Assembly (NCBI GenBank): GCA_026770705.1
Contig: JANJGN010000724.1
Span: 62,001-126,000, forward strand
Length of the DNA stretch: 64,000 nt
From: Isurus oxyrinchus
Lineage: Eukaryota
Reading direction: 5' to 3'
Part shown: positions 18 to 61,117 of the stretch, piece after piece
Numbering within the stretch: the first letter of the stretch is position 1
Layout: every line of letters begins with the position of its first letter
Made by a program: the position numbers and the translations under genes
The notes under the pieces: model-generated
What the model saw: the letters and a program-made list of their open reading frames with translations, nothing else
What the model was told of the DNA's origin: nothing
Databases searched by the model: none

Positions 18-157
18 ACAGTGGAGGAGAGATTCTGCACGTGATCCTGATCCTGGGAATACGAGCTGTGATATTCCTTGTGGCTGTGGTTATCACTATC
101 GCTGGAGTCTGTGTCTGGGAGAGACAAACAGTGAAAGGAAGTCGACAGCCTGTTTGA
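18..157 (+). CDS. Gene 0 terminal transmembrane exon of an activating-type Siglec-like receptor: xSGGEILHVILILGIRAVIFLVAVVITIAGVCVWERQTVKGSRQPV*
   Basis: Acceptor ttctctAG at 16-17. The phase-1 reading (not in the ORF track) gives a hydrophobic helix with Arg (CGA 62-64), a 12-aa tail and TGA at 155-157. Phase matches the phase-1 Ig exons. Near-identical copy at 32252-32391. Confidence 0.8.
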
Positions 158-279
158 AGCTTTGTACAGCAACAATCTGGTCAGTCAGTGCAGACAAATA
201 ACGTGTGATGTTGGGTTAAGTTGTAATGAAACTGGTCAGTGTCCTGGTTAGAATCACCTTCGTATCAGAGAGGCATTCC

Positions 280-870
280 AGCACAGTGGGAGCCCATTCA
301 GCCCATTGAGTCCATGCTGTCTCTCTGTAGAGTAATCCAGTCAGTCCCATTCCCCCGCTCTATCCCCGTATCCCTGTGAGTTTATTTCCCCTCAAGTGTC
401 CATCCAATTTCTTTTCGAAATCGTTCATCGTCTCCACTTCCACCATCCTCGTAGGCAGCGAGTTCCAGCTCATAACCACTCGCTGTGTAAAAAAGTTCCT
501 CCTCACATCCCCCCTCTGCCCAAAACCTTCAATCTGTGTCCCCCAGTCCTTGTACCATCAGCTAATGGCAACAGCTTCTCTTTGTCTACCTGATCTAAAC
601 CCATCATCATCTTGTACACCTCGATCAGGTACCCCCTCAATCTCCTTTGCTCCAAGGAGAACAACCCCAGCTTCTCCAACCCAACCTTGTAGCTAAAATC
701 CCTCATCCCTGGACCCATTCTGCTCAATCTCCTCCCCACCCTCTCAAGGACCCTCACTTCCTTCCCAAAGTGAGGAGACCAGAACTGGACACAATACTCT
801 AGTTGTGACCTAACCAGAGCTTTATAAATGTTCAGCATAACCTCCCTGTGTTTGTTCTCAATCCCTCGAT
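280..870 (-). mobile_element. CR1-type LINE 3' fragment
   Basis: ORF 503..928(-) contains YKALVRSQLEYCVQFWSPH...LEKLGLFSLEQRRLRG.LIEVYK, typical of the CR1 ORF2 C-terminus. Confidence 0.85.
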
Positions 871-1234
871 TTATGAAAAGCTTATTCTTTCCATCAGCAC
901 AAACAGCAATTTCCAAGCGGACTCCCATCAGCAGACAGAGTGCAATGAAACATCGGCATGCCTGCTTCTTAATGTACGGAGAGAAACCTGGAACGAGAGA
1001 TTCTCCTTCTTCTCCTCAGCAAGCTGAAACTTTTCCTTATACCTGGTGCTCCCCAGTCCTGCTGTGTGGACACATCATAACCACGGCATTGTCTGGCTGT
1101 GTGCAGCCAACATGGTCGAATAGGAATGAACAGAAATGTGACATTGCTAAACTCTGTTCTCTGACTGGAATGTGCTTTCTGAATGCTGCACCTTTTTCAT
1201 GCTGCGATAGATTGTAAGAAGCATTTGGGTTATG

Positions 1235-1240
1235 AATAAA
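1235..1240 (+). terminator. Candidate polyadenylation signal of gene 0
   Basis: AATAAA inside the conserved 3'UTR block; also present in the duplicate at 33468-33473. Confidence 0.4.
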
Positions 1241-1596
1241 ATTACATTGATTAACACAAGTGATTAAAATGCTCAGCCTGTTCTGTAAATATTTATAGAT
1301 TAAAATTCTTATTTTGCTGCCAAATTCTTGCCTCAAAGAAAAGCTTCTTGTTGTCACATTTTCTCTATTATATAAATTCCTGTGCCCATCCTTATTATAG
1401 GAACTTCCAATGTAAACATGTCACATTGTAGTTGCACACTGCTGCCAGTGGTGGTGCCATTCCAAAGCTGTCTTGCTGCACAGACACAGTGAGAAATATT
1501 CTCGATGTGTACATGATGTTGTTGTTACACGGACATCAGGCGGAACCTTGGGCAGTGCCTAGAATGCACTTAGGACAGTGCAGACCACACTCAGAA

Positions 1597-3050: not shown

Positions 3051-3270
3051 TGATATCAGGGATTGTCAACATGTATCATACGGCCAGAGACCTGTATTGG
3101 GAACTCTATCGCCTGCGCTTCAGCCTCTGAGATGAGGGGGAGGGGTCTAATCCCATGGAGCCAATGGAGAAGCTTGATGACTACAGCTGCCCAAATATGA
3201 GCTGACAGATCACACATGGTAAACGTTTTGCTGAGAGCACAAAACATCCTCGAACTTCTCACTGATTACC

Positions 3271-3417
3271 CACTTCCTCATTTTGTCTCACAGAGACACA
3301 TCCACCCTTTCTAATTAAACACACAGAGGGAGCAGCACAGGAAGAGGTCATTCAGCCCAAGCAGAGCGTGTGGGCAGTTCCTCCCCAGGCGAGCAGTCGG
3401 ACAGGTCCTGGGTAAGT
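3271..3417 (+). promoter_or_regulatory. Putative promoter and non-coding exon 1 of gene A (PU.1/ETS box, donor G|GTAAGT at 3411/3412)
   Basis: CACTTCCTCATTT at 3271, ACAGGAAG, AT-rich box and a consensus donor; the module recurs four times, twice directly upstream of leader exons. Confidence 0.6.
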
Positions 3418-3861
3418 AACGGAACGATTGGAATTCACTTCCACCACCAACACCGTCCTTTGTTGATGTTGTGACTTTATAAAGACAGATTCCAATGATT
3501 GATGCCTTTGAAAGATTTCTACTGATTATTGAGATCTGGGTGTGAGGCTCAAGTCTGTTGTACAGAACATCTTTCTAGCTCAAGGGATGAGGGAAGTGCA
3601 GAGACATGAGCTTTGGGACATCCTGAGGTGGTGAAAGGTGCTATGGAAATGCAAGTCCTTCATTGTTTTTCCTTCTTAAAGCCTTGTAACTATCTGCAGA
3701 GCACCTATCATCCCACAGAGAATCAAACTATTCTGTGAAGACATTGTCTAAAAGCAGATCTGATCTCTCGAGAGCTGTTGGACAAAAGGTGAAGTCTCAT
3801 TAACTCCTTTCTCTTTCAGAACTTCAGAGTTAGAAGCTGATGAAATATCTGGGAGTGGACA

Positions 3862-3901
3862 ATGATCGGGAAATCTTACTTCCTCCTGTCACTTCTCCAA
3901 G
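3862..3901 (+). CDS. Gene A signal-peptide exon MIGKSYFLLSLLQ
   Basis: Acceptor tttcAG 3818-3819, acaATG at 3862, donor CAAG|GTAAT; phase 1 joins in frame to the V exon. Confidence 0.8.
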
Positions 3902-6900
3902 GTAATATCATTGTCAGCTCAGACAGATTTATGGTGAATAGTCTTTGTAAAAGATCATTCTTATTGAGCTGTGATTGGGAACCGATTCAACAGTGAGCCA
4001 GTGCACAAACTCACACCAAGTCCCATTCACCCATCACCCCTAAACTATCTGACTCCTGGTCCTACAACATCTCAAACTTAAAATTCACATCTCTTTGTTC
4101 AAATGCATCCATTGCCTCACACTGCGTCCTTATCTCTGTAACCTCCTGCAACTCTCCCAACCAACGTCCCAGATCTCTGTGTTACTCCAATTCCGGCCTC
4201 TTGACCATCCCCCGATTCCCATCACTCCAATACTGGCGGCCGGGCCTTCAGCTGCCTGGGGCCTGAGCTCTGGAATTCACTCCCTAAACCTCGGGGATGG
4301 AGGAGATCAGAGGGTTTCATTTTACTGAAAACCACCACGACTACATCACAGCTGCAGTCAGAATAGACAGAGAGTCCAGCCCTCGCACTTCCTGCACAGT
4401 TTCACCATAGCAACCACAATAAGGAAGTAAAATAACTGAAAGTTAAACCGAAGCCAAAGCAGTCAGTTTAGAGAGATGAGATATTTACACAGTTTCCCTG
4501 TGTATCTTGTAGACACTGTGTTGGGTGGAAGACTGGCTTCACTAAACAGGGTCCTGAGGACCATGAGCCAATGTAGAATGAAGGTGTCCACTCCTGTGTC
4601 CAGGATTCTCTTCCATCCATTATGAAACCTTGGGGAGTTCCATGTGTGTCCTGTAGATGGTCCTCACTGCAGCCACTGTGCCCCAGTGATGGAGGGAGTG
4701 GATATCGAGTCTAGTGGATCTACAAACCATCCAGAGTTAAATATTTGATATTTCTCTCCCCAGTTGGACTGTCACAAGAGTGGAAAGGTGACACTCCACG
4801 AGAGGTGACAGCGCAGGAAGGTTCGTGTGTACAGATTCCATGTCATTACAGTTATCCAGCACATTTGGAAAACCAACCGCGAGGTGGACTCTGGTTTAAT
4901 AATGAGAAACAGATTCCCTGGGCTCCCATTGCCTTTCACTCCAAGGATCACAGTCACGAGTTACCACGGTTCCGCCATCGGACCCGGCTGTCTGGAGACC
5001 TGAAAGATGGCGACTGTTCCCTGATTATAAACAACATCAGACGGGAAGATGCAGGACCTTATTTTTTCAGAATAGAATTTGACAATGGTCCGAGCCATAA
5101 CTATTACCCTGTAACCCAGCTTCACGTTTCTGGTAAGTGCTGTGTTATAATTACTCAACAATTCACATTCAACATTCAATGGGAAATAACACAAACTGTG
5201 ACGTTTACATATTAACACAAAACACAGTTTATTTTAACACATTGTCTGATTCTCAATAACCTGGTGATGGCTTCCAGTTCAGTCCTAAAGCAACATCTAA
5301 TACTCACTTTAATATCAATGATTAAAAGCATTAACAGTATTATCAGTTTATCCACTCCCATCAATCTCTCCTGTCCTGTTTAAAAGTCTGACGTATCGAT
5401 AAAAGAAAGATGTGCATTTCTGCAGCGCAATTTACCACCTCAGGAGGATCCAAATCCCTTCACAGCCAATGAAATTATTCCTGAATTGTAGTCACAGATG
5501 TTAAACACAGCAGGCAGTTTGTGCACAGCAAGATCCAACAAACCACAATGTAATAAATCACCCAGATCACTGAGGAAATGAGAAGCCAGTGAACTCAAAC
5601 CTCTGGTCTGATGAAGAGTCATACGGACTCGAAACGTTAACCCTGTCTTCCTCTCCACTGATCCTGTCAGACCTGCTGAGTCTTTCCAGCAATTTTTGTT
5701 TTGGTTTCAGATTTCCAGCATCCACAGTATTCTGCATTTAACTCCAATCTCTGGTCTGAGCCTCTTCTCTCATCCAGTGTTCTCAATTCACATGTCTCGG
5801 AGTGAACGTGTATTAAGCTGAGAGACAGAAACACTACTGCCAAAGAGCAAGAAAATCTTTCCTGATCATTGTAACCTCTCAGTTCTGATATCATCCTTGT
5901 AAAAGTGCTTTCTCTTGTGGGACTGTGATTTCTATTTGAACTGATGCTTCACGTTATATTTCTCTAAAAGGATCCATTCTCTGTCTGTTAGATTTCACAG
6001 ATAAACCCACGATATTCCCTGCTGAAATTATTGCAGGAAAGCGTGTGGATGTAAGCTGCACCTTCAACACAACGTGCAATGGAACAGCAGCACCTGTCTT
6101 AACCTGGGACACTCCCACTGACGTACCTGGATCAGTCTCAAACACTGTAACTCAGCATGGTGTCACTCTGACCTATACTTCTGTTCTGACCCTGATTCCA
6201 TCACTCAAACACCACGGACACACTCTCAGCTGCAGAGTGAGATATCCATCTGTTTCATCGGACCGGACCCTCGTACTAACTGTACAAGGTAAGTACTGAC
6301 ACCCTTGATTCTATATTAGCTGTAATAGGATACAATGTGCAGAGCAAGATCCCACAAACATCACTGGGTTGAAGACAAAACAGGTCCTTTTTTATTAGTG
6401 ATATTGACCAGGGAGAGCTCTTCCTGTATTGAGCCTTGGGATTGTTTATGCCTACCTGATAGGGCAGAGGGGGCCAAGGTTGAACTTAAAAGACAATATA
6501 GGATAATATAAATATTGTCTTCATTGATGTCAAAGATTTTGGGGGAGATGTAGTATAAAATTTTAATATTAACAATGTAAATAGATAGTATTTATCATCA
6601 GTTACTCAAGGTCACCTGAGAATAGAACACGGAGAGAGATAGTTCTATAGATACCTAGGTACATAGAAACTAGGAGCAGGATTAGGACATTCAGCCCTTC
6701 AAGCCTTCTCCGCCATTCAATATGATCAAGGCTGACCCTCTATCTCAAAGCCTTATTCCCGCTTTCTCTCCGTACCCTTTGATGCCCCTAATATCAAAAT
6801 ATTTATCAGTTTCTTTCTTGAATACACTCAGTGACCCGGCCTCCACAGCCTCTGTGATGGAGAATTCCACAGATTGACCACCCTCTGAGTGAAGAAATGT

Positions 6901-9900
6901 TTCCCTATCTCAGTCCAAAATGGCCTGCCCTGTATCCTGAGATTGTCGCCCTTGGTTTTAGACTCCCCAACCAGGGGATTCATCCTCCCTCCATCCAGTC
7001 TGTCTATCTCTGTTAGAATTTCTTACGTTTATTCAGGTCTCCTCTCATTCTTCTAAACTCTAGTGAATATAGACCCAGTCGTACCAATTCTCCTCATACG
7101 ACAGTCCTGCCGCCCCTGGTATCAGCCTAGAGAACCTTCTCTGCGCTCTCTCGACGGCAAGTCTATCCTTTTTTAGGGAGGGAGACCAAAACGGCACGTA
7201 GTACCCCATGTGCAGTCTCACCAAGACCTTGTATAACTGCAGTGAGACATCCCTACTCCTGAACACAAATCCGCTTGCAATGAATGCCAACATACCATTT
7301 GCCTTCCGAATTACTTGCTGCACCTGCCTGTTTACTTTCATTGGCTAGTGCACAAGGACACCCAGATCCCTTTGTACATCCACATTTCACAATATATCAC
7401 CATTTAAATAATACTCTGCCTTTCTGTTTTGCACACCAAAGCCTACAATGTCACATTCATCCACATCATCTGCCATGTGTTTGCCCACACACACAACTTG
7501 TCTAAATCGCCTTGAAGCCTCTTTGCATCCTTCTCACAGCTCACAGCCTTACCCAGCGTTGTGTCATCAGAAAACCTGGAAATATTGCACTTGGCTCCCT
7601 CACCCAAGTCATTTATATATATCGTGAATAGTTAGGTCCCAAGCACGTGAATAGTTAGGTCCCTGTGGTATACCACTAGTCACCGCCTGCCACTCAGATA
7701 AAGACTAATTTATTCTGACCCTCTGTTTCCTGTCTATCGACCAATTCTCAATCCATGCCAGTAAATTACCCGCAATCCCATGGGCTTTAATGTTGCGCAC
7801 TAGCCTCATGTAGGACCTTATCAAAAGCCTTCTTGAAATCTAAATACACCACATCCACTGGTTATCCCTTATCTATTCTACTCGTTACATCTTCAAAATC
7901 TCCAATAGATTAGTTAACCATAATTTTCCTTTCATTAACCCATGCTGATTTTGTCGAATCCCATTAAAGCTTTCCAAGCGTTCCATTAGCACACCTTATA
8001 TAATAGGCTCTAGCGTTTTCCCCATGTTAGACTAACTGATCTGTAATTCCCAGTTTTTTTCTCTCCCTTCTATTTTAAATAGTGGAGTTACAATTGCCAC
8101 CCTCCAATCTATAGGAACTGCTCCAGAGCCTATAGAATTTTGGAGGATGACCACCAGTGCTTCCAATATTTCCAGGGTCACTTCCGTTAGTCTCTGGGAT
8201 GTAGATTTTCAGGCCCTGGGGACTGTTCAACCTTTAACCCATTAATCTCTCCAGATTCATTTTTTAAAACTAATCCTGATTATCTTCAATTCCTCCCTCT
8301 CACTAGACACTTGGTTCCCTAACATTCCTGGGAAATTATTTGTGTCCTCTTTTGTGAAGACAGAACCAAAATATATGTTCAGTTCTTCTGCCATTTCTTT
8401 GTTTCTCATTAGAATTTCCCCCATTTCTGACTGCAAGGAACCTACATCAGTCACTGCTAATCTTTCTCTCTTCACATATTTATAGAAGCTTTTACAGTCG
8501 GTTTTTACGTTCCCTGCAAGTTTACTCCCATGTTCCATTTTCCCCTTCTTGATCAATCTTTTTGTCCACTTTTGCTGAATTCTAAACTGCTCCCAATCCT
8601 CAGCATTGCTGCTTCCCCTGGCAATTTTCTGTCTCCTCTCTGGATCTAATACTATCCCTAATTTCTTTTGTAAGCCCTGGTTGAGCACCATTTCCTGACT
8701 TATTTTTACGCCAGACAGAAATGGATAATTGTTGTAGCAAATGCTTCAGCCTTATCTTTTGCCCTGATGTGCTGGGCTCCCCCTTCATTGAGGATGGGGA
8801 TATTTGTGGATTCCCCTCCTCCAGTGAGCTAATTGTCCGTTACCATTGGATACGAGCATTAGTGGACTGTATTAGACCATTATCGAAAATGAAAGCCGGA
8901 CTCCAGTATGGCCTCACTATGATGGATATGACAACTCGATTTCCAGAGACCATCCCTTTAGGAACAATTACAGCTAAAGTAGTAATAGGGAAGTTAACCC
9001 AATTTTTTACCCATTATGGATTACCGCTGGAGATCCAGTCAGATCAAGGTTCCATCTCTATGTCTTAAAATTTTCCGAACATAATGAGTAATTTGGGTAT
9101 AAAACAGTTAAAGTCCACAGCATATCATCCATAGACACAGGGATCTTTAGAGAGGGACCAACAAACACTCAGAACAATGATTGAAGCTATTGTCATGAAC
9201 TCCCCATGACTGGGACAAAGGACTGGATTTTCTTGTATTTCCCACACGAGATTCACCAACTGAATCGGCAGGTTTTAGTCTTTTTGGAATAACTTATGGA
9301 CACGAGATAAGAGGCTGTCTGAAATACATCAAAGAAAGATATTCCGGACAGAGGGATGAATCCTCTATTTCAGATGATGTGTCCATGTTTCAGGAACGGC
9401 TCATGGGAGCCTCCAAAGTGGCACAAGAACATCTTATAGTTTCTCAAACAGAGATGAAGGAATGGGGCAGACAGGCAAGCTGTGACCCGAACATCACAAC
9501 CAGGGGGATGACGTGTTAGTATCATTGCCTTGGCAGGGGGAGCCTCTGAAAGCGCGGTTCAGTGGTCCCTACAAGGTAATTAGGAGGGTTGGTCAAGTAA
9601 ATTATTTGATAGACACCCCAGATTGTAGAATAAAGAATCGGCTGTGACACATCAATATGTTAAAACGATACCATCGTAGGGAGGGAGGTAAAAAGGAGCA
9701 GGTATTTCATTTCTAACCAGATTCTGCATAGATTACAGAAAGGTTAATGCAGCAATAAAACCAGATTCCTACCCAATCCCCCGTTTAGAAGATGGTATTG
9801 ACGAGGTTGGCAGTGCCATGTTCCTTACTGAGATAAATTTGTTGGTAGTGGGGGGTGTTCGTGACCATCAGTGTGGAAGGGTTAGGTTTACAGGTTACAC

Positions 9901-12900
9901 AGACCAGACACACACCAACAGACACACACACACATGTAAGCACGCACATTCACACGCACACGCGCACACACACAACACACACACGCACACACGCACACGC
10001 ACACACACACACACGTAAGCACGCACNNNNNNNNNNNNNNNNNNNNNNNNNNNNNNNNNNNNNNNNNNNNNNNNNNNNNNNNNNNNNNNNNNNNNNNNNN
10101 NNNNNNNNNNNNNNNNNNNNNNNNNNNNNNNNNNNNNNNNNNNNNNNNNNNNNNNNNNNNNNGTGCAGAAACACAAACACACACACACACACACACATAC
10201 ACACACACAAGCACACTCACTTGTGCAGAAACACAAACACACACACACACATACACACATGTAAGCTCCCTCTCCTCACTCAGTGCTGCACTGGAGTCTC
10301 GGTGTCAGCTCCGATTCTTTGTTGAAGGAAGGTAAACTCCAGATCAACAAGACCCTGAATTGGATGAGCAACCTCCTGAACAGAGAATTGTAGATTTACC
10401 CCTCAGTGCTCCATCGATTAAATACAATTCATTGCCTGTCAAGCCCTTGGGGACATTCTGAGGATGTGAAAGGCAGTTTCTTTAAATCTGGATGGGCAGG
10501 GTCTCTGGTGGGAGAATGCTCCTGCAGTGTGACAGTTTACATAGGCAGTGCCCATTGTAAATGTGACATAGGAACTTATCTTGAGAGAAGGTGCCTAGAA
10601 ATGCACACAGGCATCAGTTACAGTGAGATGATACGGGAAGTTTTGCTGTGCACTGTGTTTGCTCACATTAAAATCTTTATATATATTTTTAGATGGACCA
10701 CAGAATCTCTCAATTACTTCTCTTGATGTGATTAACGCTTCATCGGTCAATATAATTGAGGGGAATTCTGCAGTGATAATCTGCTCTGTCGAGAGCTTCC
10801 CAGCTTCTAACCTGACGTGGCGACATCTTAATGTCCCAATGAACAGAACAAGTTCCAACAATGAGCTGTGGTTGGTGATTCCTCACGTTACATCCAGGGA
10901 CACTGGAGACTATCAGTGTGTGGCAGAGAATGAACATGGAGCAGTGGAGGGGTTCATAACCATCACTGTGGAACGTGAGTTAAAGCAAACTTCAACATCA
11001 CTCTCACATATTCACACACACACACATACACATACACACATGCATACAAACAAGCATTCATGTGCAATCCCACATGTGCACAGGTGTGCACGCCTGTATG
11101 CTTACACACAGAAGCATACATACAGAATCACACGTGTGCTTGCTCACACACACACCGACATGTGTGTGTTGTCTGTTCTCCCTGTGCTGCACTGGAGCGT
11201 TGCTCCAGATTCTGCTCTGAAACACTGACGACATCAGCTGAACAAGACCCTGTATTGGACGAGCAGCCCCCTGCACAGAGAATTGTAGGTTTATCACTCA
11301 ATACCCCATTATTCTAAAGCAATTCCTCCACTGTCAAATCCCTGTGAACATCCTGAAGATGTGAAAGACATTTTCTTTTCTTCTAGCCCGACAGTGTCTC
11401 CTTTGGTGGAAGGCTGTAATTACAGCGTGACAGTTTACATATCCACATGCAGCAAGAGCTGAGCAACTTTCAGCTTGGGCTGAGAAATGACAAGTAATGT
11501 TCATGCCACACAAGTACCAGGCAGTGAACATCTCCAACAAGAGGCAATCTAACCATCTCCCCTTGATATTCAATCACTTTACCATTGCTGAATCCCCTAC
11601 CATCAACATCCTGGAGGATGTTAACAAAACAACTAACTGGACCGGCCATAATAACTGTGGCTTTAGGAGCAGGTCAGAAGCTGGGAAATCTGTTGGGGTG
11701 AAAAACTCACCACCAGCTTCTCAAGGACAATTAGGGATGGGTAATACATGTTGGCCTAACCAGTGACACCCACTTCCCATGAATGTCCCTAAAGAAACAC
11801 ACCAGCCGTGACCATTATAGATGTTGACATAGTAACTTATAATGGGTAAGATACCTTGAAATGAAAGCAGATACCAGATAGAGAGAAATGAAGCGTGGAG
11901 CCTTGTTCACAATGAAATCTTTATATGTTTTCAGATGCACCACGGAATCTCTCAATTACTTCTCTTGATATGATTAACGCTTCATCGATCAATATAATTG
12001 AGGGGAATTCTGCAGTGATAATCTGCTCTGTCGAGAGCTTCCCAGCTTCTAACCTGACGTGGCGACATCTTAATGTCCCAATGAACAGAACAAGTTCCAG
12101 CAATGAGCTGTGGTTGGTGATTCCTCACGTTACATCCAGGGACACTGGAGACTATCAGTGTGTGGCAGGGAATGAACATGGAGCAGTGGAGGGGTTCATA
12201 ACCATCACTGTGGAACGTGAGTTACTGCAANNNNNNNNNNNNNNNNNNNNNNNNNNNNNNNNNNNNNNNNNNNNNNNNNNNNNNNNNNNNNNNNNNNNNN
12301 NNNNNNNNNNNNNNNNNNNNNNNNNNNNNNNNNNNNNNNNNNNNNNNNNNNNNNNNNNNNNNNNNNNNNNNNNNNNNNNNNNNNNNNNNNNNNNNNNNNN
12401 NGCACACAAACAAGCATTCATGTGCAATCCCACATGTGCACAGGTGTGTACACCTGCATGCACACACACAGAAGGAAACATACACAGAATCACACGTGTG
12501 CTTGCTCACACACACACAGACATGTGTGAGTTGTCTGTTCTCCCTGTGCTGCACTGGAGTGTTGCTCCAGATTCTGCTCTGAAACACTGACGACATCAGC
12601 TGAACAAGACCCTGTATTGGATGAGCAGCCCCCTGCACAGAGAATTGTAGGTTTATCACTCAATACCCCATTATTCTAAAGCAATTCCTCCACTGTCAAA
12701 TCCCTGTGAACATCCTGATGATGAGAAAGACACTTTCTTTTCTCCTAGCCTGACAGTGTCTCCTCTGGTGGAAGGCTGTAATTACAGCGTGACAGTTTAC
12801 ATATCCACACGCAGCAAGAGCTGAATAACACTCAGCTTGGGCTGAGAAATGACAAGTAATGTTCACACCACACAAGCACCAGGCAGTGATCATCTCCAAC

Positions 12901-27557: not shown

Positions 27558-27705
27558 CACTTCCTCATTTTGACTCACAGTGACACATCCAAACTTTTTA
27601 ATTAAACACAAATAGGGAGCAGCACAGGAAGAGGTCATTCAGCCCAAGCAGAGCGTGTGGGCAGTTCCTCCCCAGGCGAGCAGTCGGACAGGTCGGGGGT
27701 AAGTA
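27558..27705 (+). promoter_or_regulatory. Upstream duplicate of the promoter/exon-1 module (gene B, distal)
   Basis: CACTTCCTCATTTTGACTCA ... ACAGGAAG ... GTAAGT at 27699. Confidence 0.55.
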
Positions 27706-32391: not shown

Positions 32392-32509
32392 AGCTTTGTA
32401 CAGCAACAATCTGGTCAGTCAGTGCGGACAAATAACGTGTGATGTTGGGTTAAGTGTAATGAAACTGGTCAGTGTCCTGGTTAGAATCACCTTCGTATCA
32501 GAGAGGCAT

Positions 32510-33100: not shown

Positions 33101-33816
33101 GATTTATGAAAAGCTTATTCTTTCCATCAGCACAAACAGCAATTTCCAAGCGGACTCCCATCAGCAGACAGAGTGCAATGAAACATCGGCATGCCTGCTT
33201 CTTAATGTACGGAGAGAATCCTGGAACGAGAGATTCTCCTTCTTCTCCTCAGCAAGCTGAAACTTTTCCTTATACCTGGTGCTCCCCAGTCCTGCTGTGT
33301 GGACACATCATAACCACGGCATTGTCTGTCTGTGTGCAGCCAACATGGTCGAATAGGAATGAACAGAAATGTGACGTTGCTAAACTCTGTTCTCTGATTG
33401 GAATGTGCTTTCTGAATGCTGCACCTTTTTCATGCTGCGATAGATTGTAAGAAGCATTTGGGTTATGAATAAAATTACATTGATTAACTCAAGTGATTAA
33501 AATGTTCAGGCTGTTCTGTAGATATTTAAAGATTAAAATTCTTGTTTTGCTGCAAAATACTTGGCTCAAAGACATTACTTCATGTTGTCACGTTTTCCAA
33601 TCAGATGAATTCCTCTGTCCATCTTTATAATAGAAATTTCCAATGTAAACATGTCACATTGTAGCTGCACAAACTTGCCAGTGGCTGGTGTGATATCAAA
33701 GCTGTCTTGCTGTCGAGAAACAGCGAGAAATATTCCTGTTGTGTGCATGAACTTCATGTTAGCATGAGACACAGGCATCAGATGCAATTTTGTGCAATTT
33801 GTACAATGTTCTTTAG

Positions 33817-39563: not shown

Positions 39564-39595
<32 letters not shown>

Positions 39596-46199: not shown

Positions 46200-47557
46200 T
46201 GTTGTGATACTGTAACTGCCTCTTTGGTTTCATTCAGCTGAATCTTCAGCTCTTCAGTCTCTTCCTTGTATCTCTTGCCTTCCTCCTGGAACATTGGACA
46301 TGGTTGGGTCTTCCCTGCCAACTGTTTCTTCAGTTTGCTCAGAGCGGCACAGAATTCGCTTTCTTTCTCTTCAGGATTTTCCAGTGGAACCAACTCTGAC
46401 CTGAGGGACACTTGCAGCCTGTGAGGATGCTTCAATTCTTCAAACTCATTCCGAGATACACTCTCATATTCCCCCAGCAACTCAGCAACTCCTCCAGTGA
46501 AACATTTCAGAGCAGCTGAGCTTGGTTTTCTGGAACCAGTCTCGGCCCAGAAGACTAGGGCCCTCACCTGTCGCTATGATCACTGGAAGCTGGGCTGTCT
46601 GCTGCCTGTAGGACACAGGTACTGGGATGAGGTCCTTTCCCTGTATGGATTCTCCAGTGTGTGTCTTCAGCTGATCCATTGTTTGCTCTAAATTCAGCGT
46701 CTGGGTTCCTTCATTTAGCTGTTTAAATGTGGGCTCTTCCACCACTGTGTCTGAGGCTCCCGTATCTGCCCCATTACTAGTGGCTGCCCATTCACTTGGG
46801 TTGTGATGGTTATAGGTTCAGTTTTTACCACTGTGACATTGGACAGGGAATAGACATCGGTATCAGCAGCTTCAGGCTCTGTGATATTATTCACTTCCAT
46901 CATGTTGGTGCACTGCCTGATGGGCTGTCTCGATTTCACCCTGCATTGCTTTATTACCCGCCCCTTTCTTGTGGCAGTGATGGCATTCTGCCCCCTTGAA
47001 CCTGCAGGTGTCCAGTACGTGCTCAATGCCCCCCACATCGAGAACAGGCCAACTTCGGAGTTGCTGCTGAAATACTCCCACGAAGCCTTTTAGTTTCTGG
47101 AGCGGCAGAGACTGTCTCTCGCTTGGCGGCTGTCTCTCTCTCTCTCTCTCTCTCTCCAGTTTGAGCCTCACGCCCGGTGGTTGGTTCCTGTCCCAGCTGA
47201 GGACTGGTGCCATGTTGTACATCCTGTAAATCCCGCCAGTCTCTCCCAGCACTTTCCATGCCTGGCGCTATTTCCATGGTGCGCTTCAAATCGATGTCGG
47301 CTTCTGCGAGTAAACGGCTCTGAATGGCGTTGGGGTGAACGACACAAACCAATCGGCCCCGCAACATGTCATTGAGTGTGTCTCCGAGGTCCCAGTGCTC
47401 AGTCACCTGCTTCCACTTCACTGTATAGGTTGCGATGGACTCTCCCGGGGCCCTTACTCTGGAGTTAAACTTAAACCTTTTCATTATTACCCACGGCTTC
47501 AGCTGAAAATACATCTTCATGAGGTCGACTAATTGGTGAAAAGATTTAGAATTGGGT
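46200..47557 (-). mobile_element. Degenerate Gypsy (K02A2.6-like) gag-protease fragment
   Basis: Gag RFKFNSRVRAPGESIATY...LNDMLRGRLVC, Zn knuckles CSRCGGH/CHHCHKKG, protease ADTGAS (~46750-46768) and GPSLLGRDW; frameshifted. Confidence 0.88.
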
Positions 47558-48713
47558 GTAATACACGTCACTGTCTTCAGCTCTGAGACTGTCAATCCTC
47601 ACCAAACAATTCTTCCCTTCCAAGTCGCCGATTATTTCAGCACGTCCCACGAATGTGGCCACCCCATAATTGGGATCTTTGGTGTATGTGATGGTATATT
47701 TCCATCTATACCAATATTTATACCAAGCTCCGTGCAGTGCTGTGTAAGAGTGGGAAGGCAAGTCAAAGCTACACGGAATAACCACACAAGAGCTGCTGAT
47801 AGCCCTCCGAGGTAGCGCCTTCATAGACCATCCCTCTGACGTCACTCCTGAAAGGCAACAAGGGAGGGGACTGAACATCAAAAAGCAGAATATTACTTCA
47901 ATGGAGAGAGTCTACAGAATGCGGTACAGAGGGATCTGGGTGTCCTTGTACATGAATCACAGAAAGTCAGCATTCAGGAACACCACGGAATGAGGAAGGC
48001 AAGTGGAATGTTGGCCTTTATTGCAAAGGGATGGAGTATAAAAGGAGGGGAGTCTTGCTACAACTGTACAGGGCGTTGGTGAGATTGTATCAGGAGCAGT
48101 GTGTACAGTTCTGGTCTCCTTACTTAGGGAGGGATAGACTCTGCATTGGAGGCAGTTCAGAGGAGGATCACTGGGCTGATTCCTGGGATGAAGGGGGTTT
48201 GTCTTATGAGGAAATGTTGAGCAGGTTGGGCCCTGTATCCATTGGAGTTTAGAAGAATGAGAGGTGATCTTATTGAAACATATAAGATTCTGAGGTGGTG
48301 GGGGGTTTGACAGGGTGGATGCTGAGGGGATGTTACCCCTTGTGGGGGAATCCTGTGAAGCAATAAGGATGTTTTACTGCATTAAAGGTGCTATATAAAT
48401 GCACTGTCATTCCTATTGAAACAAGCTCTCTGATGCACAAACAGAAAATGCTGGAAAAACTCAGCAGGTCTGACAGCATCTGTGGAGAGAGAAACAGAGT
48501 TGGTGTTTCGAGTCCGTATGAGGCTTTTTCTTTTGCTATAATCTCTGACTCGCTATTCACTCAATCTCTGTGTGATCACTAACCCTGTTCTCTAAAATTA
48601 AATGTTCACTTCCTCACTCCAGGAAAGAATCCAATTCCCTGAGTTCCGATCAGTAATGAATTTGTACCTTGCAGCAAGCTGATGAAGATCAATATCAGAC
48701 CGACCTCTCCCAT
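47558..48713 (-). pseudogene. Gene C: divergent MAG/Siglec-like gene remnant (leader 48713-48668 MGEVGLILIFISLLQ; V exon 47847-~47558, truncated)
   Basis: Leader CAAG|GTAC phase 1 joins tttcAG|GA VTSEGW...SCVVIPCSFDLP...HGAWY...FVGRAEIIGDLEGKNC...EDSDVYY, which then runs into Gypsy gag. Confidence 0.85.
47880..48350 (+). mobile_element. CR1-type LINE fragment in the gene C intron
   Basis: MEYKRRGVLLQLYRALVR...CVQFWSPY. Confidence 0.85.
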
Positions 48714-51440: not shown

Positions 51441-52499
51441 CATTTACCATCTCTCTCTATCTTTCTCTTCTGCTGTCTCCCTCTTTCTCACTCTCATGCA
51501 CTCTCTCCCTCACACACACAGAATCTCCCTCACACACACACCCTCCCTCACACACACACGCACTCTCNNNNNNNNNNNNNNNNNNNNNNNNNNNNNNNNN
51601 NNNNNNNNNNNNNNNNNNNNNNNNNNNNNNNNNNNNNNNNNNNNNNNNNNNNNNNNNNNNNNNNNNNNNNNNNNNNNNNNNNNNNNNNNNNNNNNNNNNN
51701 NNNNCTCCCTCACACACACATACTCTCCCTCACACACACACACTCTCTCCCTCACACACAGAATCTCTCTCACACACACACACTCTCCCTCACACACACA
51801 TCCTCCCTCACACACACACACACTCTCTCTGATACGCACAATCTCTCCCTCACACACACAGAATCTCTCTCACACACGCACACTCTCCCTCANNNNNNNN
51901 NNNNNNNNNNNNNNNNNNNNNNNNNNNNNNNNNNNNNNNNNNNNNNNNNNNNNNNNNNNNNNNNNNNNNNNNNNNNNNNNNNNNNNNNNNNNNNNNNNNN
52001 NNNNNNNNNNNNNNNNNNNNNNNNNNNNNNNNNNNNNNNNNNNNNNNNNNNNNNNNNNNNNNNNNNNNNNNNNNNNNNNNNNNNNNNNNNNNNNNNNNNN
52101 NNNNNNNNNNNNNNNNNNNNNNNNNNNNNNNNNNNNNNNNNNNNNNNNNNNNNNNNNNNNNNNNNNNNNNNNNNNNNNNNNNNNNNNNNNNNNNNNNNNN
52201 NNNNNACACACTCTCTCCCNNNNNNNNNNNNNNNNNNNNNNNNNNNNNNNNNNNNNNNNNNNNNNNNNNNNNNNNNNNNNNNNNNNNNNNNNNNNNNNNN
52301 NNNNNNNNNNNNNNNNNNNNNNNNNNNNNNNNNNNNNNNNNNNNNNNNNGTACACACTCTTTCTAATTCTTTTTCTCTCTCACAGACTCTCTCTGTCTCT
52401 CTCGCTCTCTCTCTCTCTCAGACACACTCTCTCTAATACGGAAGGTTGTGGTTTTAAGACGTGCTCATGATTTCTGCTCAAAACCCAGGCAGATTCTCC

Positions 52500-54838: not shown

Positions 54839-54874
<36 letters not shown>

Positions 54875-55577: not shown

Positions 55578-55859
55578 ATGCTCCACAGAATCTCACATTT
55601 ACTTCTCTTGAAATGATTAATGCTTCATCGATCAATATAATTGAGGGGAATTCTGCAGTGATAATCTGCTCTGTCGAGAGCTTCCCAGCTTCTAACCTGA
55701 CGTGGCAACATCTTAATGTCCCAATGAACAGAACAAGTTGCAACAATGAGCTGTGGTTGGTGATTCCTCACGTTACATCCAGGGACACTGGAGACTATCA
55801 GTGTGTGGCAGAGAATGAACATGGAGCAGTGGAGGGATTCATAACCATCACTGTGGAAT
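55578..55859 (+). CDS. Gene D Ig exon (282 nt, extra Cys in NRTSC)
   Basis: Same family as the gene A domain 3-5 exons; splice sites intact. Confidence 0.85.
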
Positions 55860-56930
55860 GTGAGTGTACACAGACTTCAACATCTCTCACACACACACTC
55901 ACACATGCAAAAACACTCATGTGTAGACACAAACATGCACGCTTACACACAAACATACGTTCAAACACATACACAGAAACACACACAAACTCAACTCACA
56001 CATANNNNNNNNNNNNNNNNNNNNNNNNNNNNNNNNNNNNNNNNNNNNNNNNNNNNNNNNNNNNNNNNNNNNNNNNNNNNNNNNNNNNNNNNNNNNNNNN
56101 NNNNNNNNNNNNNNNNNNNNNNNNNNNNNNNNNNNNNACAGACACGCGCATACACACAAATACAAACTCACGTGCAGAAGTACACACACAAGTGTGAGCT
56201 CCCTCTCCTCTCTCAGTTCTGCACTGGAGTCATGGTATCAGCTCCCATTCTGTGTTGAAGGAAGGTAAACTCCAGATCAGCAAGACCCTGAATTGGATGA
56301 GCAACCTCCTGAACAGAGAAATGTAGATTTAGCCCTCAGTGCTCCATCGATCAAATACAATTCATTGCCTATCAAGCCCTTGGGGACATCTTGAGAGTGT
56401 TAAAGGATGTTTCTTTCATTCTAGAGGGTTAGCAACTCTACTGGTGGGAGGAAGCAACTGCAGTGTGACAGTTTACATAGGAAGTGTCCATTATAAATAT
56501 GACAGTAATTTTTCATGAGGGAAGGTACCTGGAAAAGCATTCCAACATCAGATACAGAGAGATGATGCATGGAGTCTTGCTGTGCACTATGCTTGCTCAC
56601 ATTAAAATCTTTATTTCTTTTAGACGCACCCAGAATCTCTCAATTAATTCTCTTGATATGATTAACGCTTCATCGATCAATATAATTGAGGGGAATTCTG
56701 CAGTGATAATCTGATCTGTCGAGAGCTTCCCAGCTTCTAACCTGACGTGGCGACATCTTAATGTCCCAATGAACAGAACAAGTTCCAACAATGAGCTGTG
56801 GTTGGTGATTCCTCACGTTACATCCAGGGACACTGGAGACTATCAGTGTGTGGCAGAGAATGAACATGGAGCAGTGGAGGGGTTCATAACCATCACTGTG
56901 GAACGTGAGTTACTGCAAACTCCAACATCA

Positions 56931-56975
<45 letters not shown>

Positions 56976-59900
56976 ACACACACACACACACGCACACACA
57001 CACAGACACACACACACACAGACAGAAACCTGTAGGCACACACATGCATAATTATCCACACACAGTCATACACATACAAGCACATACACAGGAAAATACA
57101 CACCCATCTCAAACACACACACACATTCATGCCCACACATAGACACACACATACACATACTCTCACTCATGGACAGACCTAGACACACAGACACATGCGC
57201 ATGCGCACACACAGACACATGTGTGCATACACACACAAACACACTCACTGGTGCAGAAACACAAACACAAACACATACACACACGTGAGTTCCCTCTCCT
57301 CTCTCAGTGCCGCACTGGAGTCTTGGTATCAGCTCCGATTCTGTGTTGAAGGAAGGTAAACTCCAGATCAACAAGACCCTGAATTGGATGAGCAACCTCC
57401 TGAACAGAGAATTGTAGATTTACCCCTCAGTGCTCCATCAATCAAATACAATTCATTGCCTGTCCAGCCCTTTGCGAAATCCTGAGGATGTGAAAGCAAG
57501 CTTCTTTCATTCTAGATGGACAACACCTCTACTGGTGGGAGAATGCAACTGCAGTGTGACAGTTTACATAGGCAGTGTCCATTAAAAATGTGGCATAAGA
57601 CGTTATCCTGAGGGAAGTTACCTGGAAATGCATTCAGACATCAGATACAGAGAGATGATGCATGGAGTCTTGCTGTGCAATAGGTTTGCTCACATTAAAC
57701 ACTTGATTTGTTTTTAGATGCACCACAGGATCTCTCATTTACTTTGCTTAATATGATTTACGCTTCATCAATCAATATAATTGAGGGGAATTCTGCAGTG
57801 ATAATCTGCTCTGTCGAGAGCTTCCCAGCTTCTAACCTGATGTGGCGACATCTTAATGTCCCAATGAACAGAACAAGTTCCAACAATGAGCTGTGGTTGG
57901 TGATTCCTCACGTTACATCCAGGGACACTGGAGACTATCAGTGTGTGGCAGAGAATGAACATGGAGCAGTGGAGGCGTTCATAACCATCACTGTGGAACG
58001 TGAGTGTGGAGATACATTTGTTTGTTTGTTGTCTCCGTGGTCTCCGTGGAGCCATTGGGATCGTGTTGTTTTTAATCCAGTTTTCTTCAATCCTCGCTCA
58101 GTCCACGTTATCCACACACCCAATTTTTCCTCTCCCTTTCTGTTTTTGCTCTCAGTTTCTCCTTCAATGGTTGTGAGGACAAGGCTGTCAGGTCTTCGTT
58201 TCCAATCTCCGTACTTGAAGACCTTTCTCTCTCTAACTGTCCTGAACAACCCTTTTAATTGCTGAACATCTCATTCTTTAATTGATAAATATTATATATA
58301 AATGTTACATGTTGAAATGCAACTATTGTATTCATAAATTGCTTAGAAATTACTAAACATTCAACAGCCAATGCAGCATTATCGAAGTGAGCTCACTGTT
58401 GTAATGTAGGAAACACAGGTACTGATTTGTGCACAGCAAGATCCCGCAAACCACCGTGTGATAATGACCTGATAGTCGATTATTTCAGTGAGGTTGGTTG
58501 TTACATGTGTAGAGACTACATACCCTTGAGGGAGGGAAGCATGTCTCGATGTGGATGTGACTCCAGTCTCAGACACCAACATGGTTAACTCACACCTGCC
58601 CTCTGAACTGGTCTCCCAGTTTGGGACAAACCAGTGGTTCAGGAGGAAGACCGCCCACCACCTTCTCAAGGGGAAACTAGGGATGGACAATAAATGTCAG
58701 CATTGCCCGAGAATGAGTATTTAAACACTGAGTGAGTGTATCGCTTCTCGAGATACATCGAAGCATCACTGTAAATCTGTAGTGCAGTAATTAATGGCTG
58801 TTTTTACAGGTAGAGACTCCAGTAAATGGACAGTAGGATTGTTCACGGCTGGGATCATGTTGAGTGTTTTTCTGGCTGGAATTTTCATCTTCATCTGTGT
58901 GAGAAAGTAAGTCTGAAGATTTAACTTGATTTTAATATAAACATTTGCTTCAATGTTCTTTCCTTAAGTCGGTGATTGTTTCCCTTGGGATCAGCACCAG
59001 GTCCCTCTCTGTAAGTGATCCCTGTGTCCACTATGATCCGGAGAGAACCTTTCATTGTCCTGTATCCAGTAAACAATCACGAGACCCAGAGATTCCTCAC
59101 TCTGCACGATTACTCCTGGATAAATATTTGCTTCAATGTTCTTTCCTGAAGTCGGTGATTGTTTCCCTTGTGTTAAGCGCCAGATGCCTCTCCGTAACTG
59201 GTCTCTTTTGTCCCTTACGATCCAGACAGTGTTTTTCATTGCCCGTTATCCAGATGAATAATAATCAGTTGCTGTGATCTGGAAGGTGCTGCCTGAAAGG
59301 GCGCTGGAAGCAGATTTAATAGGATCTTTCAAAAGGGGAATTGGATAAATACTTGAAGGTGGAACATTTGAAGGGCTACGGGGGGAAGAGCAGGGGTGGA
59401 GGGGGGGTCAAAGATATGGCGTGTCATTATAATGATATTATACCTTAGGCTTATTTATTGTACAAGAAACAAAGCACCAATCGCTCACAGGGATTGGGTG
59501 AGAATGTTAATGATTTGTTTATCAAGACTCGGCACGAGAACAGTTATACATATGGAGAAAGATTGAAGGCATCAGAGCTGTGAGTGTGTGTTCTGCTCAA
59601 AGCAAAAGTCAAACTAAGATTGGATCACATGACACACTTCCATTATAGTGATGTCACGCTGATATCCCTTATTGGAACTAGAGACAGTCCAGTCGTTGGT
59701 GTAAGGTTACACTGGGCTCTGTGTCTGTGCTGCACTGACTCTCTGCTATATGATAACCACAGTGTGATATTGTGTTATTGCAGGAGAAAGACAGTGATGG
59801 AGGAGAGAGTTTCAGGGACCAGTGACATTGTATTGACCCCCAGTCCACTCTCTGTGAAGCACCAGGTACAGGAGCTGTTTACACTCACTCCAAAGCTTCA

Positions 59901-61117
59901 ATCTCAGTGTGTAGACAACACATGTCCCAGATTCCCAGCCCAGTTACCGACAGATATCTACCTGTGGAGTCAGATATGGCTCAGTAGGTAGCATTGTCTC
60001 TCGCTCCCTCCCCCTCTTCCCTCCATCACTCGCTCTTTGACCAGAAACCTGAACGCAATAATGACAAGGCACCTGATGTCAGTAGTGAGGGAGTGCTGCA
60101 CTGTCCTAGGGTCTGTGCTGAGGGAGTGCTGGAGTGTCAGAAGGTCAGTACTGAGGGAGTGTTGCACTGTCAGAGGGTCTGTACTGAGGGAGAGCTAGAC
60201 TGTCAGAGGGTCAGTACTGAGGGAGTGCTGCGCTGTCATAGGGTCAGTACTGAGGGAGTGCTGGACTGTCAGAGGGTCAGTACTGAGGGAGTGCTGCACT
60301 GTCGGATGGTCAGTACTGAGGACAGTACTGAGTGAGTGCTGCATTGTCAAAGAGTCCATTTTCAAGGGGTGCTGCCCTCTTGAAGGGGCAGTTCCGAGGG
60401 AGTGCTGCACTGTCAGCAGAGAGCACTGAGAGAACATTGCAATGTTCGAGGTGCCTCTTTCAGAATAGTTGTATAATGCTGACCATGTTTACCATCTTAT
60501 CTGGTCCCATGGCCACATTTCCAACACTGTAGCAGTGTCGCCCTTCAATAAAATTCCTTCATTGGCGTGAGGTTCTTTGTGTGTCTGTGTTTGTGAATAA
60601 TGGGGCACAAATCTCATGATTGGGATGGTAACATAGGACTTCAAGACTCAGGTCTGCGATAGCGGGAGAGATTACATGATAAATAGAGAGAGAAAGCAAG
60701 AGAGAGAGAGAGAAAGAGAGACAGAGAAAGAGATTGAAAAAAAGGAGACAGAGAAAGAGAGTGAAAAAGAGGGTTAAACCCATTGAGACATGAGTGACAG
60801 TAATGAGGCTGCAGAATAACTTAACCCTATCAGTGCCAGTAAATGATGTGAGGATGTCTTCTGTTTCTATTTCTCTGTAGGGTAAACAGAACGTGCTGAT
60901 TACTGAGCCCCGGAACACAACTAGTGAGGGGGAGACCCCAGCTCCCCGGGGTCTCTCTGAAGGTCCAGTGGGAGGCGATGTTGGACATGGGAACCCCGAC
61001 AAACCCGACGAGCTTTTCTATGCCAACATCAACTTTTCAAAGCTGCCCGGCGGTGACAGGACTGTGCACAGGAGCGAGGACACGGAATACGCACAGATCA
61101 GGTTCCAGAAAAACTGA
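55578..61117 (+). CDS. Gene D: inhibitory Siglec-like receptor, 3' part (exons 55578-55859, [dead 56624-56904], 57718-57999, 58810-58906, 59784-59865, 60881-61117)
   Basis: Phase-compatible GT-AG exons from Ig through TM to an ITIM+ITSM tail; leader, V and domain-2 exons not found directly upstream. Confidence 0.78.
56624..56904 (+). pseudogene. Dead Ig exon in gene D (281 nt; 1-nt deletion and TGC->TGA at 56712-56714)
   Basis: GCACC-CAG deletion near the 5' end; structural Cys codon converted to stop. Confidence 0.9.
57718..57999 (+). CDS. Gene D membrane-proximal Ig exon (282 nt)
   Basis: Intact frame and splice sites. Confidence 0.87.
58810..58906 (+). CDS. Gene D transmembrane exon (R)RDSSKWTVGLFTAGIMLSVFLAGIFIFICVR(K)
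   Basis: tttttacAG / AA|GTAAGT; uncharged TM; 97 nt. Confidence 0.9.
59784..59865 (+). CDS. Gene D cytoplasmic exon 1 (K)RKTVMEERVSGTSDIVLTPSPLSVKHQ
   Basis: ttgcAG acceptor, CAG|GTACAG donor; 82 nt bridges phase 2 to phase 0 exactly. Confidence 0.82.
60881..61117 (+). CDS. Gene D terminal exon with ITIM (LFYANI, 61013-61030) and ITSM (TEYAQI, 61082-61099)
   Basis: ttctctgtAG acceptor, phase 0; ELxYAxIxF...TEYxxI matches the CD33-related Siglec tail layout. Confidence 0.9.
   Translation, partial: GKQNVLITEPRNTTSEGETPAPRGLSEGPVGGDVGHGNPDKPDELFYANINFSKLPGGDRTVHRSEDTEYAQIRFQKN

Follow-up and report, generated by a model that had tools for sequence, protein, structure and literature searches.

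The 64-kb stretch of Isurus oxyrinchus DNA analyzed here (contig JANJGN010000724.1, positions 62,001 to 126,000; hereafter the window) is likely a piece of a tandemly duplicated and fast-reshuffled shark cluster of CD33-like Siglec receptor genes that are built from exon modules. Using self-BLAST, a stop-to-stop listing of open reading frames (ORFs) and tblastn with the window's own exon peptides, we delineated four receptor-gene units, all on the plus strand. Gene A is the sole demonstrably complete gene in the window. Locus B (28.2–33.5 kb) is a recombinant or degenerate copy that joins an A-like 5′ end to a 3′ end with an arginine-containing transmembrane segment (Arg-TM; TM, transmembrane). 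Gene D is the 3′ two-thirds of a gene with an ITIM (inhibitory motif of the immunoreceptor tyrosine-based type) and an ITSM (the corresponding switch motif). At the left edge, a further copy of the Arg-TM exon forms the 3′ coding end of a gene that has its immunoglobulin (Ig) exons upstream of the window.

We propose that each gene would combine a leader, a sialic-acid-type V-set domain and a single C2-set domain with 282-nt stalk exons, near-identical and variable in number, and one of three 3′ ends. One 3′ end would consist of a neutral TM, a short exon and a terminal exon with ITIM and ITSM, predicted to recruit SHP-1/2. Another would pack a TM containing a buried Arg, a tail of 12 residues and the stop into one exon, and may couple to an Asp-bearing adaptor with an ITAM (an activation motif of the immunoreceptor tyrosine-based type). 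This exon would be spliced to a non-coding terminal exon, the putative leftover of the last exon and 3′ untranslated region (3′UTR) of an ITIM-type gene. The third would combine a homologous neutral TM with two or three short exons carrying YxN, YxxM and a C-terminal (S/A)xYGN(L/I), candidate Grb2 and PI3K docking sites and an ITIM-like site. Stalk exons and V frameworks would be kept alike by gene conversion or unequal crossing-over, with two patches of the V domain hypervariable. The junction codons of all exons are consistent in phase across the modules.

For the protein and domain searches the exons were queried one by one. The V exon of gene A (V_A) matched the Pfam families V-set (3e-12) and Ig_CD22 (1e-9), the next exon matched C2-set_2 and the stalk exon fell under the general I-set/Ig_3 domain type. 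All of the 17 best distinct PDB matches of V_A were Siglecs (E 2e-15 to 8e-13), among them Siglec-5, -7, -8, -10, CD33, MAG and sialoadhesin, and pIgR came next at 1e-8. The Siglec-like nature that an initial annotation, made from the sequence alone, had ascribed to the family is thereby supported. GPYFFRIE of V_A aligns with GSYFFRVE of Siglec-5, and the motif with the strand-F arginine, which in Siglecs touches the carboxylate of sialic acid, is present in V_A as well as in the V exon of locus B (V_B). Inspection also revealed the cysteine pattern of Siglecs, in which V has an intrasheet disulfide and an additional Cys pairs with domain 2, as GSC…IPC…GDCSL in V_A together with three Cys in the C2 exon. 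Among solved structures, domain 2 is nearest to nectin-4, MAG and CD33 domain 2, and the stalk to sidekick, contactin and MAG domain 4. The V exon is a bona fide Siglec V-set, with predicted sialic-acid binding.

A HMMER scan of 1.84 billion representatives yielded 294 proteins at E<=1e-10. The best matches are RefSeq models from Scyliorhinus canicula, S. torazame, Cetorhinus, Mustelus, Chiloscyllium, Carcharodon, Hemiscyllium, Stegostoma, Pristis and Hypanus, and the names given to the matches in RefSeq are Siglec-8, -10, -11, -12, -13, -14, -15, CD33-like and MAG-like. V_A is 91% identical to Carcharodon ‘CD33-like’ X1, which marks the source as a shark and probably a lamniform, in keeping with the cartilaginous fish of the initial annotation. 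All three tails occur among these proteins. The ITIM/ITSM tail is found in P0002, P0153 and P0018, and P0002 and P0153 show TM, RKTV…VKHQ and GKQNVLITEPR…LLYxN…TEYAQIRF, which is the exact exon order of gene D. The third tail is found in P0014 (Carcharodon) and P0007 (Chiloscyllium) as TM, c1, (c2), c3, ending in …VYVNV or …AVYGNI, which is the order of gene A. The Arg-TM directly follows two stalk domains in P0006 (S. torazame) and four in P0022 (C. punctatum); in P0092 it is joined to C2. Automatic models from three shark orders show the modules combined as first proposed.

The sequence elements named in the initial annotation all exist in the window. Gene D has a neutral TM followed by LFYANI and TEYAQI, and gene A has a homologous TM (66% identical) followed by YEN, YLEM, YAN and SVYGNL, reached through a short exon, c1, that had not been listed. 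What did not hold was the arrangement around the Arg-TM exon, which had been placed downstream of the same 282-nt Ig exon: upstream of position 32252 there is only a 153-nt 3′ fragment of that exon, without an acceptor, and upstream of the copy at position 18 the sequence lies outside the window. Nor do the three signaling modules form an intact triad here, as A is complete, B is degenerate and D has no 5′ part, although all three tails are present in other sharks. The family with its three tails is, judging from RNA-like contigs, real, expressed and modular, and apparently undescribed though known to annotation pipelines. It is already in RefSeq under automatic names and hence not unannotated. 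A search of the literature collection used here for Siglecs of sharks, elasmobranchs or cartilaginous fish found no description of this family or of paired shark Siglecs.

The Arg-TM exon encodes SGGEILHVILILGIRAVIFLVAVVITIAGVCVW with a Tyr-free tail of 12 amino acids before the stop; the consensus is (x)SGGEILHVILILGIRAVIFLVAVVITIAGVCVWERQTVKGSRQ(P/T)V. The initial annotation had recognized the TM arginine and the tail correctly (18–157 and 32252–32391), but the exon continues for 22 nt past the stop to a GT donor (179 and 32413) and is 162 nt long rather than 140. Both copies lie inside a duplication of 1.5 kb that is 95% identical by self-BLAST. A basic TM residue and a short tail without signaling motif, as in activating members of paired receptors, are thus both present. 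We could not detect any similarity of the Arg-TM exon or region to the neutral TM exons.

Read evidence came from Logan contigs covering one stretch around locus B, from the runs X1 (DNA) and X6, X16 and X18 (labeled ‘RNA?’), X18 being a run from a related species. In X16, a GT..AG joint connects the Arg-TM exon to the terminal exon (32413 to 33131), and the Arg-TM stop codon lies 22 nt before this last junction. In X18, a contig confined to 32250–32413 has a depth of 230 and a contig running from intron into exon a depth of 7. The 3′ 165 nt of the terminal exon (33331–33493) are 79% identical (E 8.5e-35) to the 3′UTR of gene D at 61146–61311, and the gene D sequence matched by the terminal exon starts just past the stop codon of the ITIM exon. 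The coding part of the ITIM exon was also considered as a relative of the terminal exon, but it is ∼45% identical in a MAFFT alignment, which is not significant, and only the 3′UTR part is homologous. From position and homology we infer that the activating 3′ end would be a TM-plus-stop exon placed before the last exon of an ITIM-type gene.

The ∼260-nt stretch before the Arg-TM exon (31995–32250) matches residues 618–698 of P0163 (Scyliorhinus torazame) by tblastn with 53% identity (E 2e-22). It contains stops in this window; either the duplicated or conserved unit extends beyond the exon, or a lost exon or regulatory element is present. A protein search with the Arg-TM segment of P0006 was little informative, with just two proteins in its length range.

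To place the family we built a tree from the best V domain of each of 150 matches. Chondrichthyan V domains form one clade (SH-aLRT 94). A tetrapod CD33-like clade (Tupaia CD33, turtle, frogs) is separate with a support of 100, teleost groups stand apart, and the chondrichthyan and tetrapod clades meet in a polytomy that leaves the deep order of the V tree unresolved. In a shark clade of 19 rows (support 98), proteins with the Arg-TM, the ITIM/ITSM and the third tail are mixed together and cluster by taxon. Monophyly of the V domains of the three Arg-TM proteins, a group chosen after the first tree had been seen, was rejected by 30.9 log-likelihood units (p-AU 0.0007). Because the Arg-TM forms are nested and intermixed in the shark V clade, they arose or were reshuffled within it, independently of Siglec-14/16, in line with one of the two origins, ancestral or independent, suggested initially. 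The ITIM/ITSM terminal exon is weakly alignable with the tails of the tetrapod clade and is probably ancestral.

The six full 282-nt stalk exons (A1 10693, A2 11935, A3 13313, D1 55578, D2 56624, D3 57718) are 94–98% identical, with proportions of synonymous and nonsynonymous differences (Nei-Gojobori) of pS 0–0.07 and pN 0.01–0.05. The 300-nt introns upstream of them share 43–85% identity overall and fall into two classes, 74–85% identical within and ∼45–53% between classes, and the downstream introns are unalignable. The homogenized Ig stalk of the initial annotation is therefore plain from pS set against the diverged introns. Purifying selection is not the cause of the contrast between exons and introns, because pS and pN are about equal, and D2, a dead pseudoexon, is still 95–97% identical to the other stalk exons, as similar as the live ones are. 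The contrast fits exon-limited gene conversion and would support it. That the likeness reflects very recent duplication and purifying selection, with no gene conversion, is unlikely in our view. The copies do stand in tandem with a period of 1.1–1.4 kb, and the introns upstream of A1, D1, D2 and D3 are still 78–85% identical. However, synonymous sites differ by 0–7% where the adjoining introns differ by 15–25% or cannot be aligned, A2 and A3 carry the same exon behind a different class of upstream intron, and neither the near-equality of pN and pS nor the state of D2 fits selection.

The V exons are mosaics. Along the exon, V_A and V_B are 98%, 63%, 99%, 55% and 95% identical, and the two divergent patches, both with indels, span strands B-C to D and the F-G region. 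In mammalian Siglecs these patches hold the ligand-contact loops. The homogenized part would thus be the membrane-proximal stalk and the V framework, and not the ligand-contact loops; signs of gene conversion are found for the stalk exon and the V framework. Near-identical ligand-binding domains on an activating and an inhibitory member were not found, gene D being without a V exon in the window. Strict pairing, with the same ligand and opposite signals, is unsupported in the window because the part that determines specificity is not what is homogenized. The window therefore does not bear out the pairing in the Siglec-5/14 sense that had been suggested, since V_A and V_B diverge most in the predicted ligand-contact loops.

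Locus B is a patchwork. Its 5′ part, 28204–30119, copies gene A 3266–5339 at 90–94% and includes, besides a c1-like exon, both exon 1 and the V exon plus 200 nt of intronic sequence. In exon 1, a 1-nt deletion merges an upstream ATG with the signal-peptide frame (28774–28835 versus 3840–3901 of gene A). V_B has a Tyr in place of its first Cys, the extra Cys normally bonded to domain 2, and an Arg in place of the strand-C Trp. The half stalk exon at 30436–30588 follows ∼300 nt of unrelated or satellite DNA, and its likeness to D1 extends to the first bases of the intron; the Arg-TM exon lies 1.66 kb beyond it. A cryptic acceptor at 30468/30469 was considered for the half exon but is out of phase by reading of the sequence.

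Joints from exon 1 to V (28835 to 29539) were seen in X16 and X18, and from the c1-like exon to exon 1 (28346 to ∼28757) in X6 and X18. The DNA run X1 carries none of the GT..AG joints found at locus B in X6, X16 and X18. Two X16 contigs and one X1 contig have an extra T behind 29658, which makes V_B 375 nt long and fully open (depth of the insertion 356/1128 in X1 and 15.7/20.4 in X16). As these contigs hold an open V exon, either the V_B frameshift is allelic, or it stems from a very similar paralogue or from misassembly, and there may be null and functional alleles of an activating-type copy at locus B. A splice from V_B to the Arg-TM exon would be in frame, with GAC as junction codon, and the change from Cys to Tyr would fit a V-only product in which the domain-2 partner is absent. 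At best, the in-frame allele of locus B encodes a V-only activating receptor.

Several observations weigh against a cluster of working modular receptors. The shark RefSeq models are automatic predictions, one of which (P0163) runs on through sequence resembling an intron. That X6, X16 and X18 are RNA is a guess, intronic sequence is present in these runs too, and contigs at 92% likeness cannot be assigned to a single paralogue. Among the 15 of 481 joints listed, none connects an Ig exon to the Arg-TM acceptor at 32252. Locus B has no C2 exon, first Cys or strand-C Trp and is frameshifted in the assembly. For gene D, tblastn with the window's exon peptides found no leader, V or C2 exon in the assembled plus strand between 34 and 55 kb, and its pseudoexon D2 keeps good splice sites. 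No FcR gamma chain was found in cartilaginous fish (Akula et al., 2014; PMC4016189). DAP12 or another adaptor is pure inference, as are the ligand and the signaling. Local evidence for a functional activating/inhibitory pair in the window is incomplete.

With these points in mind we offer, tentatively and short of calling it probable, the idea that sharks built three-way Siglec signaling independently of mammals from exon cassettes. An Arg-TM-plus-stop cassette would have been captured by dropping in before the last exon of an ITIM gene, the spliced 3′UTR exon recording this conversion from inhibitory to activating. Stalk length would be set by a tandem exon array that conversion homogenizes, while the ligand-contact patches of V diversify. 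Locus B would be a V-only activating receptor for which both functional (+T) and null forms segregate, as they do for human SIGLEC14 and SIGLEC16. It is also possible, and here again we would stop short of probable, that the triad is duplication debris, i.e., juxtaposed fragments whose intact members are elsewhere, so that only gene A works and B and D are dead by-products of unequal recombination. Locus B with its lost ATG, 374-nt V exon, Cys-to-Tyr and Trp-to-Arg changes, missing C2 and half stalk exon would be expected from such a process, as would gene D without leader, V or C2 in 34–55 kb and with a stop and a 1-nt deletion in D2, and the heavy load of retroelements and satellites between the genes. 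However, the extra T of X16 and X1 restores the V_B frame, the 1-nt deletion in exon 1 of B puts the upstream ATG in frame, the Cys-to-Tyr change suits the loss of the partner cysteine in C2, V_B could be spliced in frame to the Arg-TM exon, the Arg-TM and ITIM exons are intact with the former spliced in RNA-like contigs, and the 5′ exons of gene D could be hidden in the gaps at 51568–52349.

These gaps bear equally on whether B and D might form one long gene, in which the leader and V of B are spliced either to the Arg-TM exon, with polyadenylation near 33.5 kb, or ∼22 kb onward to D1/D3, TM_D and the ITIM exon. The first product would be an activating and the second an inhibitory isoform, and alternative splicing and polyadenylation would create the pair. 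We consider this very improbable. B precedes D on one strand, as such a gene would need, the assembly shows no 5′ exons belonging to gene D itself, and a V_B-to-D1 splice would be in frame because every junction is phase 1. Yet no such joint was seen among those listed from the contigs on the locus B stretch, a comparison that ends short of the D region, and the interval between B and D contains a V relic on the opposite strand, retroelements and satellite DNA running to kilobases. Other sharks have the homologues annotated as genes apart, and the gaps could conceal 5′ exons that belong to gene D.

The cluster shares with mammalian CD33-related Siglecs (CD33, Siglec-5, -7, -8, -10) the YFFR V-set, the Siglec cysteines, the C2-set domain 2, one Ig domain per phase-1 exon and a terminal exon in which an ITIM (LxYAxI/L) near the membrane is followed ∼20 residues on by a distal TEYxxI. 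As in CD33-related genes, ITIM and distal ITSM stand together in the single terminal exon of gene D. Unlike the mammalian genes, the shark genes form a clade of their own, and their stalk is an array of one repeated exon. Within the window there are no flanking framework genes by which synteny with the mammalian CD33rSiglec cluster could be judged.

As in Siglec-5/14 and Siglec-11/16 (PMC4042635; PMC13358205), for which the paired-receptor concept and gene conversion have been reviewed (PMC13358205), members with an ITIM tail and members with a basic TM and very short tail are linked in a cluster and their sequences are homogenized by gene conversion. The activating form likewise appears derived from an inhibitory-type gene, of which the shark one keeps the terminal exon and 3′UTR, and there may be a polymorphic null allele of the activating copy. 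The converted tract differs, being the ligand-binding V and first C2 in mammals and the stalk exon and V framework in the shark, where copies A and B diverge in their putative ligand-contact patches. Furthermore, the shark Arg-TM has its own exon, whose sequence shows no relation to that of the neutral TM, a third tail type exists, and the Arg-TM forms are nested in the shark clade and therefore arose independently of Siglec-14/16.

Skate MDIR and teleost NITR and LITR are multigene paired families of the Ig superfamily that mix ITIM and charged-TM tails. The FcR-like (PMC2413239) and CEACAM (PMC5112662) genes of Xenopus are similar lineage-specific expansions that mix ITIM, short charged-TM and other tails on related ectodomains. 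All these families have non-Siglec ectodomains, whereas the shark ectodomain is a Siglec-type lectin domain. Shark models in RefSeq, for example XP_072326180.1 (S. torazame ‘Siglec-12’), XP_072409577.1 (C. punctatum ‘Siglec-13’) and XP_041037177.1 (C. carcharias ‘CD33-like’), belong to the same family and have V domains that are 68–91% identical and the same three tails; they were predicted automatically and received mammalian names by best match.

Cao and colleagues reportedly described CD33rSiglec clusters in teleosts in 2009. According to Bornhöfft et al. (2020; PMC7226832), the Siglecs regularly present in fish are only Siglec-1, CD22, MAG and Siglec-15, with inhibitory CD33-related Siglecs lacking. 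A shark cluster with a CD33-type ITIM/ITSM exon and activating and third-type partners would move the origin of this tail to the base of the jawed vertebrates. It would also be a second, independent example of the co-evolution of activating and inhibitory Siglecs, and the spliced leftover of an ITIM last exon behind the Arg-TM would be a rare direct footprint of how an inhibitory receptor is turned into an activating one. In practical terms the value is limited, as RefSeq lists the genes already, under automatic names, and the copies in the window are mostly incomplete.

The coordinates of all exons are given in Table 1.

Table 1. Receptor exons in the window, in order of position (aa, amino acid).
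Feature	Position	Strand	Remarks
Arg-TM exon, copy 1	18–179	+	Phase-1 acceptor; stop 155–157; GT donor after 179; 98% aa identical to copy 2
Terminal non-coding exon, Arg-TM copy 1	898–1260	+	By homology to the spliced copy at 33131; 3′ part related to the 3′UTR of the ITIM gene; AATAAA at 1235
c1-type exon copy upstream of gene A	3327–3411	+	Probable 5′ non-coding exon; equivalent copy 28262–28346 spliced to exon 1
Gene A exon 1	3820–3901	+	ATG at 3862; signal peptide MIGKSYFLLSLLQ; phase-1 donor; leader shared with shark RefSeq models
Gene A V-set exon	4764–5132	+	369 nt; phase 1-1; Siglec-type; YFFRIE arginine; Siglec cysteine pattern
Gene A C2-set domain-2 exon	5992–6288	+	297 nt; 92% identical to Carcharodon CD33-like
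Stalk Ig exon A1	10693–10974	+	282 nt; phase 1-1
Stalk Ig exon A2	11935–12216	+	282 nt; ends 15 nt before the gap at 12231
Stalk Ig exon A3	13313–13594	+	282 nt
Gene A neutral TM exon	14859–14955	+	…AGLLGAGICLSVGLSGFFIFKCVRK; phase-2 donor
Gene A cytoplasmic exon c1	15715–15799	+	GSSTGRGHSAQAERVGSSSPGEQSDRYW; also found in models from Carcharodon and Chiloscyllium
Gene A cytoplasmic exon c2	16311–16415	+	…EYRGPVYENCEH…; carries YEN; phase 0
Gene A terminal coding exon c3	24090–24206	+	KKDEKYLEMKSN…LYANCEFAEDSVYGNL, stop; YLEM, YAN, C-terminal SVYGNL; phase 0
c1-type exon copy, locus B	28262–28346	+	Donor joined to exon 1 in RNA-like contigs
Locus B exon 1	28757–28835	+	ATA for the ATG of gene A
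Locus B V-set exon	29539–29912	+	374 nt in the assembly (frameshift); YFFRIE kept
Half stalk exon, locus B	30436–30588	+	3′ 153 nt; D1-like, 96–98%; no acceptor; not includable in frame
Arg-TM exon, copy 2	32252–32413	+	Stop 32389–32391; donor after 32413 used in RNA-like contigs
Terminal non-coding exon, locus B	33131–33490	+	Acceptor 33131 used; AATAAA at 33468
Gene D stalk exon D1	55578–55859	+	Intact
Gene D stalk pseudoexon D2	56624–56904	+	281 nt; 1-nt deletion; first Cys TGC to TGA; splice sites intact
Gene D stalk exon D3	57718–57999	+	Intact
Gene D neutral TM exon	58810–58906	+	66% identical to TM_A (14859–14955)
Gene D cytoplasmic exon	59784–59865	+	RKTVMEERVSGTSDIVLTPSPLSVKHQ; absent from the initial annotation
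Gene D terminal coding exon	60881–61117	+	ITIM LFYANI; ITSM TEYAQI; 3′UTR to ∼61320

All Ig exons of gene A are phase 1-1, and c1 restores phase 0 after the phase-2 TM exon. The Tyr-rich frame is reached via the strong AAA/GTAAGT donor (phase 2) and c1, the same way as in P0014 and P0007. Without c1, this frame would appear to need a weak phase-0 donor in the TM exon, a route that we rejected. Exon c2 may be optional, since P0007 has a homologous exon and P0014 lacks it. SVYGNL at the C-terminus fits the ITIM consensus. Exons c2 and c3 are duplicated tail exons that flank a satellite array.

This array, of 7.4 kb (16545–23991) and 310 copies of a 24-bp unit (AACCCCGTTCAGAATCAATAATCA), fills the c2-c3 intron. 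A whole-window repeat search was swamped by the 24-bp satellite, and self-BLAST was used instead. The c1 exon (GSSTGRGHSAQAERVGSSSPGEQSDR.W) occurs in four copies (3327–3411, 15715–15799, 27594–27713 and 28262–28346), of which that at 15715 alone follows a TM exon; those found ∼450 nt upstream of exon 1 in A and B appear to act as 5′ exons. In exon 1 of gene A (3840–3901), an upstream ATG opens another frame (MKYLGVDNDREILLPPVTSP…), which is used by the Carcharodon isoform X2 model P0013.

The window has a G+C content of 44.8% and six N gaps. About one third of it is satellite or microsatellite DNA, including arrays with units of 33, 37, 43 and 74 bp. All six gaps lie in introns or intergenic low-complexity DNA and none inside a recognized exon. 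Three of them (10027–10162, 12231–12401 and 56005–56137) are in (CA)n-rich introns within the tandem stalk-exon arrays with their period of 1.1–1.4 kb, where extra stalk exons were possibly collapsed. As the gaps at 12231–12401 and 56005–56137 sit inside stalk arrays, the copy number and length of the stalk are lower bounds.

Retroelement fragments, with integrase core and reverse transcriptase on both strands, were found in intronic and intergenic DNA at 8685–10015, 35549–37290 (minus strand) and 62244–63330. On the minus strand, 47549–47911 carries another, distinct Siglec-like V exon with 29% identity to V_A, of which the relic itself spans 47549–47830. A retroelement (45700–47600 region) with a protease-like ORF at 46485–46817 cuts it short after …DSDVYY. 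This V exon is the relic of a dead gene.

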